A stretch of DNA of 63,847 nt, counting the filler, from Octopus bimaculoides (lineage: Eukaryota): assembly GCF_001194135.2 (NCBI RefSeq). It is 10 parts of 9 records of this genome, joined end to end, with 100 filler letters (N's around TTAATTAATTAA, not from the genome) between each part and the next. Parts side by side here need not be neighbours in the genome. Positions count along the whole stretch, not along the records: positions 14,673 to 38,854 come from NC_068984.1; 9 more parts are not named here. One strand, given 5' to 3'. Position 1 is the stretch's first letter. Every line of letters starts with the position of its first letter. The position numbers and the translations under genes were made by a program. Of the stretch, positions 14,544 to 35,886 are shown in pieces. The notes beneath the pieces were generated by a model, which saw only the letters and a program-made list of their open reading frames with translations, searched no databases and had not been told where the DNA came from.

Positions 14544-15027
14544 TTATATTGCTTTATATGTATGTATGTATGNNNNNNNNNNNNNNNNNNNNNNNNNNNN
14601 NNNNNNNNNNNNNNNNTTAATTAATTAANNNNNNNNNNNNNNNNNNNNNNNNNNNNNNNNNNNNNNNNNNNNAGTTAGTGGAATAGTTTCATTTTTAAAG
14701 TGAAAGTATTTGACATGAGTGTTTTTGTTTCACTTTTGACACGTAATACTTAAATAGTGGAGGAGATATTATGTTGCCGTGTGCTCGAACTCTGCAAGAA
14801 GTTAATAATTTTTTTTGACTAAAACACAACTGGAACCCTAAGTAAGGCATGTGTAAAATTTGAATGAAATTGGTTGCGTAGTTCTCGAGTTTTAGGGATT
14901 CACACACACAGACAGACAGACAGACAGATAGACAGACACACATTCTCATTTTTATATATATAGATAGATGAACAATTAAAACAATTGTCATAACTAAATT
15001 AATGCTTTCTCATTTTAATTTTTCCAG

Positions 15028-17951: not shown

Positions 17952-19290
17952 TAACTGTACTCCATTTAATTTTCTGGAAGAAAACTTTGTAAATGGAGTC
18001 TGTTCCTTTAATTTTTCAAACTAACCTTATCATTTACTAAGTTATTATTTTTACTATTAATACAAGCTATCGTTTCATTTAATTAGTTATTTAATAAAAT
18101 GCCTGAAATGGTCACAACTTAAATGCAATATTGAAATCAGTGTCTTAAGTTTTCAATTATAAATATCAGAATATTAAGATAAACAGTTAAACAGATAAAA
18201 CACTTGCTCTAAATGGTTTAAGTATATATCTAAAAAGAGAGAATATTTGTTCATCTTTTTTCACACTATATATTCAGTTTAGCGTACTAATTTTTACTAA
18301 TTATTTAGTCCAGATTCTAAGGATCTTAATATGATTTAATCTATGTTATATTAAGTTAGCAGTATTCGAAAAACCAAGTATATTTAGATAATAGTAAACC
18401 AGACTAGTTTCTATAAAGTAAATGAACTCTTAAGATAGCTGTATTGCCAAAATAGTTTGACTAATTATTTGTATCAAGTGTAATTAATTAGTCTACATTT
18501 GTTTTTACTAAAATGCATCATAATGTGAATGTAACAAATTATTTTACATCCATTATTTACCTTAAGAGCAGGGTTTTTCGTTTTGTTACTTACTAAATGC
18601 TAATCTCACCCCACCCAAGAATATTCATTTTCAAGAAGTTTTGCTGATAAATCTGTTTCATTGAATATCAGCTCTGAATCTAATGGTTTTCTTATAATGT
18701 CAATATATTTATATATGTATACAATATGTATATTTTTTTTTATATTTAATCTAATGAAATAAGCATGTTTAACTTAAGCACAGTAACTTTACACTCACTT
18801 TAATTCTTTAATTCTTATACAAAACTGTCAAATCAACACATTAAAAAAATTTATTTAATTTAAATAATGATATTTTTAAAATCTAGGTAATTGATTTCTG
18901 AATGATTAAAGCTCAATAAATAGACAATAATTCACTTACAGCGTTGAATTAGTGGGAAAATTATCAAAGTCGCTTCCATTAAAAAATATGTTAAAAATTA
19001 AAAAAAAAAGAATATGTTATAACTTATGATATTTTTCATCTGAAAGCTTTAAGGGTTTGGTTACTAACATATATTTTGACTTAACACCTTCATTTACATC
19101 GATATTTTATTTAGTTGTTATTGTTGTTGTTTTTTTTGTTTTTTTTTGTTATATGTTTTATTTATATTTCCAAAAATATTGAAATTCATTCATAATTTGT
19201 TATCAAAACAAATTCTAATAACTAACTTCCTTGTAGAGGTTAAGATTATTTAATTGTTTTCAAGATGACTTTGAGATGGTATTAGTAAGA

Positions 19291-27327: not shown

Positions 27328-27620
27328 GCTTGATCACTTCTTCATGGTGTGTATCACGATCGCTACTTAGATTCTTTGCACAATGTTTGATCAAGCTCAA
27401 TAACGATCTGTTAAGCAACAACTACCCCAAAAGTATACTATCCACTCCAATTATGAAGAAGAGAGAGGATGAGGCCAATAAACTGTCCACAGTCTGTCTA
27501 CCCTATGTGAAAGGCCTCTCCGAAAAGATACAAAAGATATGCGACCCATATGACATCAGGAGAGTATTCAAGAGTAATACAACACTTCGCAAATATCTCC
27601 TTCGAGTAAAACCACCAATA
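27328..27620 (+). mobile_element. Penelope-like element fragment (RT thumb/linker) with an inverted 5' segment
   Basis: Plus strand 27388-27620 reads IKLNNDLLSNNYPKS...TVCLPYVKGLSEKIQKICDPYDIRRVFKSNTTLRKYLLRVKPP. Minus strand 27385-27328 reads HCAKNLSSDRDTHHEEVIK, which directly precedes it in coding order. Confidence 0.8.
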
Positions 27621-28612
27621 GGTGACCAAGTCTGTAGTGGGGGGTGGATGCTCATAGAATGTTACCTCTAGAATAAGAATAACCTGGGCAATGTTCAGAA
27701 AGCTCCTATTCCTACTGGTGACAAAGGGCCTCTCGCTTAATGTGAAAGGTAGATTGTACGATGCATGTATGCAAACTGCTATGCTTCACAGCAGTGAAAC
27801 ATGGACTGTGACTGCTGAAGACATGCATAGGCTCGAAAGAAATGAAGCTAGCATGATCTGCTGGATGTGTAATGTCAGTGTGCACACACGACAGAGTGTA
27901 AGCTCCCTCAGAGAAATGTTGGATATAAGAAGCATCGGATGTGGCGTGCAAGAGAGACGTTTGTGTTGGTATGGTCATGTACTACGGATGGATGAGGATA
28001 GCTGTGTGAAGAAGTGCCACTCCCAAACAGTGGAAGGAATCTGGGATAGAGGGAGACCCATGTAGACATGGGATGAGGTGGTGAAGCATGACCTTCGAAT
28101 ATTGGGCCTCAGAGGCAATGACAAAAGACCAAAGCCTCTGGAGATATGTGGCAAGTAAAGCAAGTTCACAGCTGTAACCTACACCAGAGTCGCATAACCA
28201 GCCCACTCAAAAAGTACCTTGGATTGTAGGGCAACATGCTGTGCTTGAGAAGACCTATTGAGTCAAGTACATCAAAATCAAAATCAAATCAAATCACAAT
28301 CAAATGGAAATTGTAGTTGTGGTCTCTGTGCCAGTGGCACGTAAAAAGCACCATCCGAATGTAGCTGATGCCAGTGCTTCCTTGACTGGCTCCCATGCCA
28401 GTGGCACGTAAAAAGCACCATCTGATCATGGTCGATGCAGCTCTCTCTTGCCCCTGTGCCGGTGACACATAAAAAAGCACCCACTACACTCTCAGAGTGG
28501 CTGGCATTAGGAAGGGTAGACTGGAGCCTGGTGCAGCCTCCTGGCTTCCCAGATCCCAATCAAACCGTCCAACCCATGCCTGCATGGAAAATGGACGTTA
28601 AACGATGATGAT
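27621..28612 (+). mobile_element. RTE-clade LINE 3' half with 3' UTR and (GAT)n tail
   Basis: GDQVCSGG...KGRLYDACMQTAMLHSSETW...ERNEASMICWMC...RRLCWYGHVLRMDEDSCVKKC...RGRP, then hairpin repeats and AACCCATGCC.GCATGGAAAATGGACGTTAAACGATGATGAT. Confidence 0.9.
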
Positions 28613-29050
28613 ATATAAAGCATGATTTATTCATGATCGGAGTTGTTTAAAAACCAAGGTACTACTGTATTTCAGTTTGTATAGTTCTTTCAGTTTCCAC
28701 CTACTATATCCAGTCCCAAGGATTTGGTCGCCCTAGGTCTATAGTAGAAGACACTTACTCAGGATGTTCTGCAGTGGTAGTGGTCTCCAAACACACTGTG
28801 GGGAAACAAACTTCTTAACTACACAACCTGTGCCTACTATTTTATCATTAGTAAATATACAAAAAACATAATACAAATATATTTAATATCAGCATAACAT
28901 TACAGACACATATCTCAGAAGTATAGTTTATTCCAATGAATGAGTACAATGCAATCCATATAATGAAATGTATATAATGTACTGCTTTAAAGAAAGATGT
29001 AAAGTATTTAAATGATAATGCTTGAAATGTTTGAATTGCTTTAACACAGT

Positions 29051-29180
29051 CTAGCCAGGAATACATGTGCAATAAAGAGGAACAGAGAATAAGTCAAAAG
29101 TTGGTATCAAACTGGTTGAATTTTTCCAGGCCAGCAATGAAATTGTTCTGTTCCTTGATTCGCATTCAGTACAAAAACCC
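29051..29180 (-). CDS. Spaetzle/neurotrophin-like cystine-knot protein, terminal coding exon
   Basis: ttgtttag|G GGT TTT TGT... gives (T)GFCTECESRNRTISLLAWKNSTSLIPTFDLFSVPLYCTCIPG*. It ends in FxVPxxCxC and has NRT and NST sequons. Confidence 0.8.
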
Positions 29181-30114
29181 CTAAACAAAAACAAAGAGCA
29201 ATGAAAATTATTTTAGATATTCATGTCCACACTCATTAGCAAATGTTATTTTAATACTCAAATATATTTTATGTGATGGGATTAAAAACTCTAATTGTAT
29301 AATTACCACATCATGAATTTATTCTACAAATGCCAAAATTTACAAACTTAAAATTTTTTCTAACAAACATTAAGCCCCAAAATATAAAGAAGTATGTAAC
29401 AGATAAAAAATGTTTTTCTATTGAGCTGACCATCTTTTCTCTGATTTCATTCTTAATATTCATTAAGCATTTATTCACCACTATACAGAAAATGTTGTCA
29501 CATTTGGGCTGGAGCATCACCTGATGTCCTTTCTTTGACTTGACATCGACACATCAAACCTATAATCATTGTTCTGTGAAACATTGTTCTGCATCATATT
29601 CATGCCACTGTTGCTCATTTGGATGCACCTTTTCCACTCAGCATAGCTCTTAGGTTATGAAAACATTTTTCTTACTTTCCATCTTCATTTCATTTCCAAG
29701 ATCCAGGAACAAAACAAAAAAAGAAGAATGGAAAAGGAGGAGGTGGAAGAGCTGGAGCAGGGAGGGTGAGAAATGGAAGAGGAAAGGTGAGGGAGGAAGG
29801 AGGGAAGAGAAGAAAGAGGAGAGAGGAGAAGAAAGAGGTAAGAAGGAGAGGAGAAGAAAGAGGAGAGGAAGTGGAAGAGGAGAAAGAGGAAGGGGAAGAA
29901 TATGAAGAAAGAAGGAAGACTCAAAAGAAAGAACATGAAAAATTCAAAAACAATAATAAAGAAAAGAAACAAAAGAAATGACAACAAAGATGATAGAAAA
30001 AGAGAAAGAAGAAAAGAGAATAGAATGAAAAGTTACATGAAAGAAATATAGAAATGGTTGGGATGATAGATGGAAGAAGGATGAGAAGGGTATGTCTTTG
30101 ATCTGTCTACTTAC

Positions 30115-30228
30115 GTGCCTGAACATGTAACCCAAGGAATAACTTGGTACGCATCCTCAAAATGAATTATAGGTCTTTCTAATCCATCTAAATTTTGCAG
30201 GGCATCTAGCATTTGGAAAGAAGGTGTC
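30115..30228 (-). CDS. Spaetzle/neurotrophin-like cystine-knot protein, penultimate exon (114 bp)
   Basis: ttttgttcttag|G ACA CCT...GGC AC|gtaagt gives TPSFQMLDALQNLDGLERPIIHFEDAYQVIPWVTCSG(T). Strong splice sites; joins in frame to 29180. Confidence 0.8.
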
Positions 30229-30349
30229 CTAAGAACAAAAAATAAAGATTAGAATTTAATTGCAAGCAAACAGTGAAAAAAATTAGTTGACATAGATAAG
30301 GTGTTGTACTACCACCTGATGTAATTTCATGTATTATGATTTCAAACTC

Positions 30350-30510
30350 TTTAGAAAATGAAAGAACAAATATGTGGTTCAGAAGTTCACCTTGCAACCA
30401 TGTGGTCTCCAATTCAATCTCACTATACAGCATTCTGAGCAGATATCTTCTACAATAGCCCTCGGTTGACCAATGCCATGTGAGTGAATTTGGTAGATGG
30501 AAACTGTAGC
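30350..30510 (-). mobile_element. tRNA-derived SINE
   Basis: On the plus strand TGAGTGAATTTGGTAGATGGAAACTG and GATATCTTCTACAATAGCCCTCGG match the SINE family in the opposite orientation to the 960-1683 copy's plus-strand text; head near 30370-30420. Orientation of this copy is best taken as plus-strand head; assignment of strand is uncertain. Confidence 0.55.
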
Positions 30511-30599
30511 AAACCCAAGGTATACACATACACACACACACACACACACACTCACACGCACATACACAAACAAACAAACACACACACACACACACACAT

Positions 30600-30800
30600 A
30601 TATATCAAAGTAAGCACATAAATGTGAAACTGGGTGGGGAAAACAGTACTCGAATACCAGAGGAAGAGTAATATGCTTTATAATTATTAAAGCTGTAAAA
30701 ACATCACAAAAATATCAGAAAAAACTGCTACTCAGAGTTTCTCGTTACCATTTGTCAGACAGTTTAGATTCTCAATTATTTTAACTCAGAGCACATGGCC
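30600..30800 (-). mobile_element. Penelope pseudo-LTR-derived repeat with a decayed hammerhead (30722-30765)
   Basis: Homologous to 10750-10910 (GTACTCGA.TACC.GA.G.AGAGTAATATGCTTTA; CTGyTACTCAGAGTTTC). Confidence 0.6.
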
Positions 30801-31358
30801 TTAAAATTTTGGGGAGAAGGAGGCTAGTTGATTACATTGACCCCAGTGTGTACCTGATATATATANNNNNNNNNNNNNNNNNNNNNNNNNNNNNNNNNNN
30901 NNNNNNNNNNNNNNNNNNNNNNNNNNNNNNNNNNNNNNNNNNNNNNNNNNNNNNNNNNNNNNNNNNNNNNNNNNNNNNNNNNNNNNNNNNNNNNNNNNNN
31001 NNNNNNNNNNNNNNNNNNNNNNNNNNNNNNNNNNNNNNNNNNNNNNNNNNNNNNNNNNNNNNNNNNNNNNNNNNNNNNNNNNNNNNNNNNNNNNNNNNNN
31101 NNNNNNNNNNNNNNNNNNNNNNNNNNNNNNNNNNNNNNNNNNNNNNNNNNNNNNNNNNNNNNNNNNNNNNNNNNNNNNNNNNNNNNNNNNNNNNNNNNNN
31201 NNNNNNNNNNNNNNNNNNNNNNNNNNNNNNNNNNNNNNNNNNNNNNNNNNNNNNNNNNNNNNNNNNNNNNNNNNNNNNNNNNNNNNNNNNNNNNNNNNNN
31301 NNNNNNNNNNNNNNNNNNNNNNNNNNNNNNNNNNNNNNNNNNNNNNNNNNNNNNNNNG

Positions 31359-32105
31359 ATATAGCCGCCCCCAAATCATCACAGATCCTCCTCTATGTTT
31401 AACAGTTGGAAGAAGGCAGTCTGGATCAAATGCTTCTTTTGGCTGTCTCCACACATATACTTGGCCAGTGGTCGGAAATGAGATAAAGGATGACTCGTCC
31501 AAGAAAATAACATTCTTCCACTGCTCTAGGGACCAATTCTGTAGGTTTTTACTCCACTTTAAACACTTTGCAACATTTGTTTTTGAAAGTAGTGGTTTTC
31601 TGATTGTAGCTCTTCCATGAAACCTGGCTTTGTGCAACTCCCAGAGAACAACTTTTGTGGAAACTGGGTTCTCGAAGTGGTCATTAAGCTCTGCAGTAAT
31701 TTTGGGAGCTGTACTTTTGTGATCCTTTCTAACAATTCGCATAAGAGTCCAATGGTCCCTATATGAAAGTTTGGGTTTTCTTCTGGAGTTTTGTTTCAAC
31801 AAGGAGGTTTTTCCCTCTTTCTCAAAGGCTGTCATTACTTTCGAGAGAGTACTTGTTGATACACCAAACATTTCGGCTGTTTTCATTATGCTAGTGCCTG
31901 CCATCCGAGCACCAACAATTTGACCTCTTTGAAAGTCATGACTTTTAATTACCTTTTCTGATGATATCTGAAAAGAAACAGCAATTTTAGCAAACCATAT
32001 TAATAAGTAAAAAAAAACAAAAATAAACAAGCTTTTGATGGCTTTATAGATATTTCAAAATTATGATGCTATGATGCTAAGTGTTTCCATTATTTTGTCC
32101 AACCC

Positions 32106-32108
<3 letters not shown>
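31359..32108 (-). mobile_element. Tc1-family DNA transposon, 5' half (TIR plus transposase N-terminus to the first catalytic Asp)
   Basis: TA|CAGGGGTTGGACAAAATAATGGAAACAC terminus. DFQRGQIVGARMAG...GRATIRKPLL...WKNVIFLDESSF...TVKHRGGSVMIWG; truncated by an N gap. Confidence 0.92.
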
Positions 32109-32188
<80 letters not shown>

Positions 32189-32502
32189 CATAGATATGCT
32201 TGTGGTTTGTGTATGTGTAGACAAACAGACAGATAGACTAATAACCTGGTGTAAAACACAATGTTAGATGAGTATAGAATGGTAATAGGAACAAAGAGAT
32301 GACACATTAAAAAATATTACATATATTATATATACACACACACACATACACATAAACTTCTAACGGTGTATATATATGATTAAGTGGATCTATAGATGTA
32401 TGCATATGTGTATGTAGTAAGTTTTAAACCACCCTTGTGATCTTTTTTATACATATACCACACCTGGCTCTACAGTTTTTATTGTATTTGGTACTTATGT
32501 GT

Positions 32503-32611
<109 letters not shown>

Positions 32612-32619
32612 AAAATTTG

Positions 32620-33420
32620 CTTTGGGGGTTTGAAAACGCACCTGAATTTGAAAAACGTGTAGCTGTTTTTAAATAGCTTTATTCATATACCAAACTAGTT
32701 TTAACAATTTTTTGTTTATCAATGGCACAAATGTATACAAATGTGAATAAAACAAGGGGATTTTAACAGAGTTCAAAATTACAAAGTAGAAATCGAATAA
32801 ACATGTTTAAACCATTAAATGTTCACATGAAATTCAATGAGCTTCGCAGGGATAGCTAATATCAAAGTACGTACTTGGCAAAGAATATAACAAATGTACA
32901 TTACTAAATTTAGGTGAAAGTTTGGCCTGACTTAAATTTATATGTTCAGCCCTCTGAGAGGTAGATACAGGTCCAGCAGTTAGGACAGTTGCATTTTTTG
33001 ACTAGTGGGGTTGTATTTTTGGTGGGTAATTTGGCACTGGTAAAATTTCATTCATACTGAGTTTTTAGAGAATGCATGGACAAGAGAGAGTAAAAAGAAA
33101 GGGTTCTTTTTACAGTTTCTATCATTGTGCAGTTCTTTTTTCTGTTGTTTACTGGACTCTTCACTTTTAATGAAGTATTTTGAGGATTCAGAAAATATCT
33201 TGTGTATATATGTTTTTACAGAAAAGGATCGAATTTTTGATTCATTATAATTTTGATGACGTCTTATTCTTTCTGGTGGATGTTTTTGGTCAAAAAGATA
33301 AATTTTGTTTTGGTATTAGTGTTTTGGTTGGTTGTTTTGTTGGTTCCCTGTACATAGAAACATGTTTTGATTGGTAGTAGGTTTCCTGACGTCACTTTAT
33401 TTTGATAAAGAACCTGTTTT
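32620..33420 (-). mobile_element. Heavily degraded Penelope-like element (RT thumb/GIY-YIG region)
   Basis: Minus strand KKCNCPNCWTCIYLSEG.(TY)KFKSGQTF resembles the PLE Cys cluster ahead of GIY-YIG. Many stops and frameshifts. Confidence 0.45.
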
Positions 33421-33544
33421 TGTTTTGATCAAGTTCGGCATTCTGTTTGGTTGACTTCCCTGTAGGGACTCAGTCATTAGTTTTTACCTAATGGTCATCA
33501 ACCATTCCAGTTGGTTGATTCCTTTCAGGAGTTGTTTTCTAGTT

Positions 33545-33575
<31 letters not shown>

Positions 33576-33599
33576 TCCAGTTCTGATCAGGGGTAAAAT

Positions 33600-35400
33600 T
33601 TCATTAATCTAGTGACAACAACCAGATTACTACTTATCACTTTGAAGGGTATGCATTTGCAAAACAGGAACAGGAAATATCAACCAAATAACTGATGCAC
33701 AAAAGAGATAGAGATGCAGGAAAAGCAGTAAAAAATGACAATCGATGCAGACTTTGTAGAGTTAACACTGAAGATATCACCCACATCATAAGCAGTTGTC
33801 CGAAAATGTCATCACAGTATTATCTACCGATGAGGCATGATATTGTAGTTAGGATGCTGTGTAACAAGATTTGCCAAAAAGATATCCCCAAGGGCAAAGA
33901 CAAAAGAACCTACAGTATGGTGGAAGCAATAGCTTCTCATAATAAAAAGGATGTAGTGAAACCTCTCTCTCCAGTATTTAATTACAAATGATAACGTGGC
34001 GGCTAACATCTAGCTTTCGGCCGTTTGGATCCCTTGTGTCCACCACCCTGATTGGTTCTTATTTGTGCGGCATTTATCACCAGTTCAGTTTCGCGCCAGG
34101 GTGCATACCGTCCAATCGTGGCCTTCAGATAAGGTCACGTGAGAGAGTTTCCGGTGAGCCCTATTTCATCTATAAATAAGCCTGCTCCAACTACGCCTGT
34201 TTGTTGCGACCACAGACCTTTTCAGATCTGGTCGTAGACCACACACAGAACACAGCTCCAACCAGTTTCCAGCGACGACGCCAACACTACCGATCTACTG
34301 TCTACTACAGTTCCGCCAGCAGCACCACCACCAGAGTACACACCAACAACGACAGTGGTTTCATCTCTGCACTGTTCGAGTGGATTATTTCCACCACGAA
34401 GATAACAGTCAGAACAACCATGCGAGAATCTTCTGTACCAAGTAACCGGTCGCAGCATCGACGCTCGACTTCACACACAACATGTAACACCACAGCTCTG
34501 CTCCTTGGCCACGACTTCTTGTACAGACATTCTACTTGTGTACCTCTTCTATGAACTGGTATTTTCTCCATCTTTGTTCAGAATGCTTATAGTCTCTCAC
34601 AGACTCTTATTCCATGTCCTGTATTTCTCTCTCACATACACATATATTGTACTCACACATATTGTACACACACTCTTGCTTATACGACGGTCCGTCATTC
34701 ATATTGTTGTATACATACTCTTGTACAAGAAGGCCTGTCATACACATTGTATTGTTTATATTGCCGCATGCACGTACACATAGACACACTGTTCACTATG
34801 TTAATAAACCTACTCTCTCTCTATATATATATCTAACTGTTGTCTCTGTCACTCGCTCTCTCTTGTTCCTTTACTGGCACTTGCTCGCATCATCATACTG
34901 CGAGCCCTTCATATGTCCTATTACATGTTTTGTGTTCGACCATGCGACGCGTTTAAAGGAGTCTCTCCACTTCGTCGCCATCTCCTTGATTTGCACGGTT
35001 GTTCTTTTACAAGGAGTATTGGTGAAATGTCCCAGTAAAAACTTCAATAAAATGTAAACATAATAGAGCTGATATAATGATTTGGGATAGAAAAGAGAGA
35101 AACTGTATAGTTGTGGAAATCAGTTGCCCAGCGGATATTAATATAAACCTGAAGATCAGTGAAAAAGAGAAAACCTGCACTAAACTATTGAGAAATCTGT
35201 AGTTATACTATCCAGATTACAAGTTCAGGTTTACACCTATGATTATTGGGGCACCGGAATATGTAACACACTGACTAAATACCAATCTTGAGAAATTAGG
35301 CTTCTTAAAACCAGAAAAGAGAAAGCTGATTCAAAGACTACAGATCCAAGCCATCACTGGAACTGTAAAATCTGTAAAACTTTCCAGAAGTTTATTATTT
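33600..35400 (+). mobile_element. R4/Dong-like RLE LINE 3' part (CCHC finger plus PD-(D/E)xK nuclease), split by an LTR
   Basis: CRLCRVNTEDITHIISSC...MRHDIV (33695-33951) resumes in frame at 35016 as EYW*NVPVKTSIKCKHNRADIMIWDRKERNCIVVEISCPAD. Confidence 0.88.
33952..35011 (+). mobile_element. Solo LTR (1060 bp) with a 4-bp TSD
   Basis: TGTA...TACA termini, AGGA duplicated at 33948-33951 and 35012-35015, TATAAATAA near 34170 and AATAAA near 34803. Confidence 0.85.
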
Positions 35401-35775
35401 AAATATATATGAACATGTCTAGATATGCAACTATATGCATGAGAATATATACAAAAAACAAAACATACAAATCTGCACATATACATACATACTTGCATAC
35501 AAAAACACCCTGTTGTTGACGTCGAAATTCCAATGAAGGAACCTTGGATCTAAGTTAGTAACTGGCTCTTTATCTATTGGTAAGAAATCTTGAAATAAAA
35601 CTGAATAATGACATACATACATATGTACACACACTCACATGCATATCTGCAGTATACTACCAACAAGTGACACCTAATGGCTGTTTCAAATTACTGTAAA
35701 CTCGACACTATGGTACCCAGCCAGTACTAGCATCCTACTTGTTGACATGCCTGGATTTTATGAATCCTGTAACTA

Positions 35776-35812
<37 letters not shown>

Positions 35813-35822
35813 ATCTCTATAT

Positions 35823-35884
<62 letters not shown>

Positions 35885-35886
<2 letters not shown>

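Follow-up and report, generated by a model that had tools for sequence, protein, structure and literature searches.

The stretch of DNA analysed here (63,847 nucleotides (nt) including filler, denoted as the window) is composed of ten parts of the genome of Octopus bimaculoides (NCBI RefSeq assembly GCF_001194135.2), one of which (positions 14,673 to 38,854) originates from NC_068984.1. Within this part, the region 29051-30228 harbors two minus-strand exons that are real, spliced, and transcribed, and that represent the last two coding exons of the already annotated O. bimaculoides gene LOC106877899. The predicted product is a secreted cystine-knot pro-protein with two isoforms (X1 and X2), which differ in their 5' exons and share the two exons of the window. 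The gene is arranged as follows (window coordinates; residues numbered as in the X1 protein; knot Cys numbered I to VI):

28916..29050, minus strand: 3' untranslated region, with contig ends in the RNA runs X19, X25, X27, and X28
29051..29180, minus strand: coding part of the last exon, with the last base of the T133 codon, amino acids (aa) 134-175, and the TAG stop; it holds C136, C139, C170, and C172 (Cys III-VI), the sequons N143 and N153, and the FD.FS.P.YCTC motif
29181..30114, minus strand: intron of 934 nt, GT..AG, with the RNA joint in seven runs
30115..30228, minus strand: penultimate coding exon, common to X1 and X2, with an AG acceptor, a GTAAGT donor, and RNA support; it codes for the last base of the split codon 95, aa 96-132, and the first two bases of T133, and covers the beta-strands after Cys I plus Cys II (C130)
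30229..38854, minus strand: 3' part of the first intron of X1, with transposon remnants and without an exon of LOC106877899

Joining the two exons (minus-strand 30228-30115 and 29180-29051) yields 244 nt, frame 1 of which encodes a peptide of 80 aa with five Cys and two N-x-S/T sequons (NRT and NST). A preliminary description of this region, made from the sequence alone, had predicted this in-frame arrangement with canonical AG/GT sites, and it is correct to the base. On the gene strand (a slash marks the border), the acceptor at 30228 reads ...ttgttcttag/GACACC, i.e. ...ttgttcttag/GACACCTTC..., the donor after 30115 reads GGCAC/gtaagt, i.e. ...TCAGGCAC/gtaagtag..., and the acceptor at 29180 reads ...tttgtttag/GGGTTT, i.e. 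...tttgtttag/GGGTTTTTGT...; the reading frame closes with CCTGGC TAG, the stop codon being located at 29053-29051. The predicted joint between 29180 and 30115 is present in seven RNA runs, namely in assembled transcripts of five (X19, X20, X25, X27, and X28) and in raw reads of two others (X24 and X42). It skips 934 nt and appears as CT..AC on the plus strand, corresponding to GT..AG on the gene strand. RNA contigs and reads span 30114-30228 and are joined to 29179/29180, and read depth is restricted to the two exons. The transcripts possess a polyadenylation signal (AATAAA, 28932-28927), and most of them end at 28914-28918, 10-15 nt past this signal, with the exception of one low-depth contig of X20 that extends to 28808. 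Upstream of 30228, all transcripts run into ACTTGACAGCAAG... (plus strand), translating ...EYEKKSCCQV/TPSFQ.... Neither this RNA loose end nor tblastn located the upstream exon in the window, and tblastn detected no paralogous exons in this window piece.

The intron also contains low-depth RNA contigs at 29376-29559 and 29737-29986 (X20, X19), plus scattered reads of X24. These are most simply regarded as pre-mRNA or repeat-derived transcripts; no alternative joint was seen. A low-complexity tract of ~300 nt, CT-rich on the gene strand, occupies ~29740-30040 of this intron, with tandem-repeat rows at 29793-30032.

The full-length protein was retrieved by an exhaustive phmmer search against 1.84 billion representatives. 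It consists of 175 aa (P0001), of which aa 96-175 are 100% identical to the peptide, and tblastn places aa 96-133 on the exon 30115..30228 with 100% identity. P0001 corresponds to XP_014782433.1, XP_052823039.1, and UniProt A0A0L8GC44 and is annotated as "uncharacterized protein LOC106877899"; in UniRef, A0A0L8GC44 is named "Spaetzle domain-containing protein", a label also carried by a scallop relative. The gene, which the preliminary description had taken to be invisible, has been part of RefSeq since the first annotation, and its Spaetzle label is likewise known already. The suggestion of an undescribed ligand therefore holds solely for its function; a literature search found no publication naming LOC106877899. 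A word-indexed homologue search with the 80-aa fragment returned no match, so that exhaustive HMMER searches were required, and exact-protein look-ups likewise gave no match, either for the spliced peptide or for the mechanical 47-aa open reading frame (ORF).

P0001 displays the layout of a secreted pro-protein (signal peptide, prodomain, C-terminal knot of ~100 aa). Its N-terminus is hydrophobic (MCANKLFLIFVIMDICVYA...; KD 3.0) and is read as a signal peptide. In the prodomain, two helices are predicted and the motif KYPGIFHT (family form YPxLFxT) is conserved, and the C-terminal domain of ~90 aa holds seven Cys (92, 93, 130, 136, 139, 170, and 172). A signal peptide and a prodomain had been expected upstream of the two exons, as had the first knot Cys, and all of them were recovered, the latter as C93 in exon 1 of X1. 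X1 is spread over three coding exons of the chromosome assembly (CM046604.1, loci L001 and L002). The first of them, exon 1, covers aa 1-95, ends with ...TGC TGT CAA GT/gtaagt, and is separated from the two window exons by a 20.3-kb intron; the window piece stops within this intron, ~11.7 kb short of exon 1. In X2 (P0012, XP_052823040.1, 168 aa), exon 1 is replaced by a 9-nt exon (ATGCTGAAA/gtaagt) and a second exon 26 kb further upstream, the 5' exons of X2 lying 26-31 kb beyond exon 1 of X1. Their product differs from that of exon 1 in its signal peptide and contains a prodomain with the motif RYPNLFYT, a furin-type KRGRR/S site, and the terminus ...EEFCCPM. The X2 exon and exon 1 of X1 finish in the same codon phase, two residues past CC, and residue 95, encoded by the split codon, is Val in X1 and Met in X2. 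By their sequence, the two 5' modules appear to be duplicated, mutually exclusive exons that feed a common knot body. The upstream joins in the seven RNA runs examined are of the X1 type in every case.

This architecture extends to Octopus vulgaris, whose orthologue is 86% identical to the peptide. The annotated O. vulgaris protein (P0002) corresponds to X2. The genome nevertheless contains an intact, unannotated X1-type first exon (L003:57615-57893, OX597817.1; ATG...CCQV), located between the exon of the X2 type and those common to both isoforms, which keeps the cag/ATG acceptor and the GT/gtaagt donor. O. vulgaris thus probably makes an X1-type isoform as well, which is missing from its annotation. 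Since an intact X1-type exon and an X2-type protein occur side by side, the two-module architecture is conserved in both species.

Exhaustive profile and HMMER searches revealed few true relatives, yet these span three molluscan classes. The family encompasses O. bimaculoides and O. vulgaris among the cephalopods, three Elysia species among the gastropods, and, among the bivalves, Mizuhopecten yessoensis, two paralogues of Mercenaria mercenaria (XP_045167964.1 is the Mercenaria accession), and Ruditapes philippinarum (XP_060558392.1), complemented by a few unlabelled transcript assemblies. Three matches to the 80-aa fragment (P0003, P0006, and P0008) were dropped as spurious, being long low-complexity repeat proteins. 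In the alignment of 11 members, CC (92-93), N107, G110, Q123, P126, C130, G134, C139, L149, F161, F164, P167, Y169, C170, and C172 are invariant, and the family consensus reads ...CCP...N..G...Q.IP...C...G.C..C..N.T..LL...FD.FS.P.YCTC. With members in cephalopods, gastropods, and bivalves, the family is pan-molluscan. Most members exhibit a basic candidate cleavage site 6-12 residues before CC, which takes the form of RGRR/S in X2; most relatives have a lone Arg or Lys there, and X1 shows no obvious site.

Between the two Octopus species, the sequence changes rapidly. Comparison of the window region 29051-30228 with L003:70842-72100 of O. vulgaris gives 3.7 synonymous and 16.3 non-synonymous differences over 80 shared codons, corresponding to a ratio of non-synonymous to synonymous substitution rates (dN/dS) of ~1.3, a value that rests on small counts. 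The ratio is ~1.2 for the X2-type exon and ~1.0 for the X1-type exon. The latter (dS 0.22, 61% aa identity) diverges faster than the neighboring intron, the intron between the shared exons being 86-91% identical across the two species. Ten of the 11 aa changes in the shared part fall into two loops, one surrounding Cys II-IV (aa 129-140) and the other at aa 152-156, while the strands and all invariant residues are unchanged. The product of LOC106877899 is thus best read from its sequence as a fast-evolving but intact ligand rather than that of a decaying gene. A pseudogene or a chance ORF is ruled out by the RNA support and the intact ORFs in two species, and also by Cys and motifs that stay invariant in three molluscan classes and by the confinement of the substitutions to loops.

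With regard to sequence, Spaetzle (PF16077) is the sole Pfam family matched, both by the 80-aa fragment and by full-length members. The fragment reaches an E value of 0.0047 (17.9 bits) and P0001 17.2 bits; five of eight full-length members match (E 0.0016-0.08; best 19.5 bits), and three do not. For calibration, sequences of Drosophila Spätzle C-106, Bombyx PTTH, and human NGF, each validated against chains of the Protein Data Bank (PDB), were used: Spätzle C-106 scores 107.5 bits on PF16077, and PTTH matches only Noggin, weakly. A direct hhalign comparison of the family profile with Spätzle C-106 gives an E value of 3.3e-4 over 65 columns and pairs C130, C139, C170, and C172 with C47, C68, C99, and C101 of Spätzle, so that YCTC is aligned to CCKC. 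The distances between Cys I and II and between Cys IV and V (37/31) are the same in the octopus family and in Spätzle C-106 (37/31), in contrast to PTTH (23/42) and NGF (43/28). The six knot Cys, including the V-x-VI pair, consequently occur in Spätzle spacing, except for a shorter III-IV loop.

Regarding the fold, AlphaFold2 models the full protein, supplied with the 11-sequence alignment, with a per-residue confidence (pLDDT) of 84-95 over residues 90-175; the domain alone is all beta, with a pLDDT of 87.6 and a predicted template modeling (pTM) score of 0.73. In a Foldseek search of the PDB, this domain model shows an NGF-like cystine-knot fold. The top 22 matches are neurotrophins (NGF, NT-3, BDNF, and NT-4) and horseshoe-crab coagulogen, with a probability of 1.0, E values of 1e-3 to 6e-2, and a template modeling (TM) score normalized to the query of up to 0.72. 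The knots of VEGF, TGF-beta, and IL-17 lie well behind the neurotrophins (E ~0.3-1.3). NGF, Spätzle, and coagulogen resemble one another in fold, as is to be expected throughout the superfamily, and this resemblance does not discriminate between them. The secreted cystine-knot protein proposed in the preliminary description is thereby supported by the signal peptide and prodomain of P0001 and by a predicted fold of the NGF/neurotrophin/coagulogen type, and the earlier interpretation was largely right at the superfamily level. The profile match that it anticipated was found for Spaetzle, with 17-19.5 bits and thus short of the gathering score of 27, whereas NGF was unmatched.

The closest known system is Drosophila Spätzle C-106 (PF16077; PDB 3E07, 4BV4, and 4LXR), the ligand of Toll. 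Both proteins proceed from a signal peptide through a prodomain to a C-terminal seven-Cys knot of ~100 aa, and both exhibit a 'Q.I...C' motif before Cys II and a C-terminus of the form F.(I/V)P..C.C. Unlike in Spätzle, the III-IV loop of the octopus family is 11 residues shorter, the spare Cys adjoins Cys I (CC...), YCTC is found in place of CCKC, and the YPxLFxT prodomain motif is specific to the molluscan family. A site of the Easter/SPE type is not evident in the octopus protein, X2 having the furin-type RGRR instead. Alternatively spliced prodomain isoforms are reportedly also produced from spz, as ascribed to DeLotto et al. in 2001. Among mollusks, the closest described case, compared by description only, is Paphia undulata, a member of the Veneridae like Mercenaria and Ruditapes, with what is called the 'first mollusk spätzle homolog' (Yu et al., 2015, Fish Shellfish Immunol 47:712; as cited in PMC7773633 and PMC6915886). 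According to PMC7773633, this gene is reportedly induced by heat-killed bacteria, a link to signaling via Toll-like receptors (TLRs) is not demonstrated, and no Spätzle homologue other than that of the clam is described outside arthropods.

Taken together, LOC106877899 is proposed to encode a secreted knot pro-protein of the NGF/Spätzle/coagulogen type that would act as a dimeric, receptor-cross-linking extracellular ligand, most likely of a TLR; a probability of about 0.5 is assigned to this interpretation. The pro-protein (175 aa in X1, 168 aa in X2) would enter the secretory pathway and form its knot in the order I-IV, II-V, and III-VI (C93-C139, C130-C170, and C136-C172), leaving C92 for an interchain bond by which two chains would dimerize. 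Cleavage would release the prodomain at the basic site 6-12 residues before CC, furin-type in X2 (RGRR/S) and without such a site in X1, and the freed dimer could then cross-link its receptor as an extracellular ligand. The two sets of first exons would furnish one knot with two signal-peptide/prodomain modules and thus with two modes of expression or activation. The preliminary description had suggested a possible loss of the interchain disulfide bond and a non-covalent dimer. A Cys of the Spätzle type before Cys V (CC-x-C) is indeed lacking, its position being taken by the invariant Y169; yet the upstream exon adds an invariant CC, resulting in seven Cys, an odd count, with the spare one next to Cys I. 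Because of these two upstream Cys and the spare one beside Cys I, a covalent dimer comes into consideration and, by sequence, seems at least as likely as a non-covalent one. In PTTH, the interchain bond employs the Cys adjacent to Cys I (Bombyx C15 interchain, C17 as Cys I). The disulfide map of PTTH is said to go back to Ishibashi et al. and to 5AOQ.

As to the receptor, a TLR ranks first because of the Spätzle-like sequence and Cys spacing; that the octopus protein is the molluscan counterpart of Spätzle is suggested by these features with a likelihood that falls slightly short of even. Another or unknown target would follow, then Torso, and finally receptors of the Trk/p75 type. Mollusks possess many TLRs.

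Several observations weigh against this interpretation. All scores on PF16077 (14-19.5 bits) lie under the Pfam gathering score of 27 bits, so that family membership in the strict sense is not attained, and the hhalign probability to Spätzle C-106 amounts to only 38%. The offset from Cys III to Cys IV is 3 as opposed to 14 in Spätzle (2 vs 13 intervening residues), and the seventh Cys is situated beside Cys I instead of Cys V. The peptide and the family profile match nothing among PDB sequences, and arthropod Spätzle was not reached by the database searches, including a profile search with the domain only. Spätzle chains are also absent from the top 50 Foldseek matches, in which neurotrophins, coagulogen, and PTTH are present. 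This absence may reflect the incomplete loops of the Spätzle crystal structures; it does speak against a structural kinship with Spätzle in particular. Members from Elysia are devoid of Cys III, and the disulfide pairing may therefore vary within the family. X1, to which the RNA joins seen here are confined, lacks an obvious cleavage site, and the dN/dS between the two Octopus species provides no signal of purifying selection at this distance.

That same ratio, together with the concentration of ten of 11 changes in two surface loops, would also suit a fast-evolving secreted effector built on an NGF-type scaffold (salivary/venom, coagulogen-like clotting, or reproductive) instead of a cytokine of a conserved pathway. 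Snake venoms contain NGF, and coagulogen is among the best fold matches of the octopus domain (query TM 0.72, root-mean-square deviation 2.9 Å). The substitution counts behind the ratio are small, however, Pfam Coagulin is not matched, and the family persists, with its invariant residues and its prodomain motif, in cephalopods, gastropods, and bivalves alike, which makes an effector of this kind improbable.

Still less probable is a ligand of the Trunk/PTTH type, i.e. a dimer held together by a disulfide bond and activating the receptor tyrosine kinase Torso. The seven-Cys layout with a spare Cys beside Cys I seems to fit Bombyx PTTH (PDB 5AOQ) better than Spätzle, and a short III-IV loop and the removal of a prodomain at a basic site, the latter predicted for the octopus protein, are shared features as well. 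The patterns CC...C...C..C...CxC of the octopus protein and CxC...C...C...C...CxC of PTTH resemble each other. Trunk and Torso are reported in lophotrochozoans, and molluscan Trunk/PTTH precursors with and without dibasic sites are on record (PMC8398477, PMC6660194). In hhalign, by contrast, the validated PTTH reaches a probability of 0.5% with just 10 aligned columns, and its Cys spacing (23/42) deviates from 37/31 both between Cys I and II and between Cys IV and V. PTTH gives its weak match to Noggin, whereas the octopus family matches Spaetzle only and Noggin never. 5AOQ occupies rank 23 of the Foldseek matches with a probability of 0.99, and with a query TM of 0.53 and an E value of 0.14, the fold match is weaker than those to neurotrophins and coagulogen.

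An equally faint chance is given to a true neurotrophin, which would signal as a non-covalent or covalent dimer via receptors of the Trk/p75 type in the octopus nervous system. Structurally, the octopus domain comes closest to NGF, NT-3, BDNF, and NT-4 (E 1e-3 to 3e-2, probability 1.0, target TM 0.5-0.65), whose monomers are likewise elongated beta-strand cystine knots of about its size; this similarity, being superfamily-wide, does not discriminate. There is no similarity on the level of sequence profiles: Pfam NGF (PF00243) is not matched at E values up to 10, and the hhalign probability to the validated human NGF is 0.2%. Neurotrophins moreover form non-covalent dimers and have six Cys instead of seven, in another spacing (43/28 vs 37/31). 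Mollusks have a separate canonical neurotrophin that is recognizable as a member of the NGF family, ApNT of Aplysia. The remaining candidates are rejected: IL-17, which is expanded in octopus, has no Pfam match and IL-17A chains give Foldseek E values of ~0.9-1.3, VEGF/PDGF and TGF-beta knots fail on Pfam and Foldseek ranks, and membership among the coagulogens lacks a Pfam Coagulin match as well as the complete 175-aa architecture of coagulogen, 1AOC aligning by its knot half only (query TM 0.72, target TM 0.40).

The surroundings of the gene are rich in repeats. Within intron 1 of X1, a Tc1/mariner transposase ORF (30801-32030, minus strand; Pfam HTH_Tnp_Tc3_2 and HTH_28) is interrupted by an assembly gap of 492 N (30866-31357), and an (AC)n microsatellite is located at 30524-30598, ~300 nt upstream of the acceptor at 30228. 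A reverse-transcriptase zinc-binding domain (zf-RVT) gives a weak, sub-threshold match at 33695-33991 (plus strand). The segments 36444-36776 and 37377-37632 are taken to be copies of a dispersed repeat because they are 92-96% identical to other sites of the same intron further upstream (L001:17203-17536 and 18883-19135). A gag fragment of a long terminal repeat (LTR) retrotransposon with a CCHC zinc knuckle (38182-38854, plus strand) is bounded by a gap (37707-38181) and by the edge of the piece; behind it, a gag-type aspartyl protease is matched weakly, at a sub-threshold score. Downstream of the gene, 27330-28065 (plus strand) contains two ORFs without Pfam match that resemble retroelement remnants.

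A more far-reaching version of the preferred interpretation, a ligand of TLRs, can be put forward only tentatively and is, as a whole, rather doubtful. It holds that the molluscan family with its YPxLFxT prodomain and CC...YCxC knot would constitute an endogenous cytokine ligand of molluscan TLRs, that furin-cleaved X2 and furin-site-free X1 would represent two modes of activation, and that the receptor-facing loops would be under diversifying selection. At stake is whether an endogenous cytokine triggers lophotrochozoan TLRs, as is the case in Drosophila, or whether microbial molecules do so directly, as in vertebrates. By sequence, the octopus gene and its gastropod and bivalve relatives offer concrete, expressed candidates for Toll ligands. 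If this proposal is true, the ligand-receptor axis of Spätzle and Toll would predate the split of ecdysozoans and lophotrochozoans.

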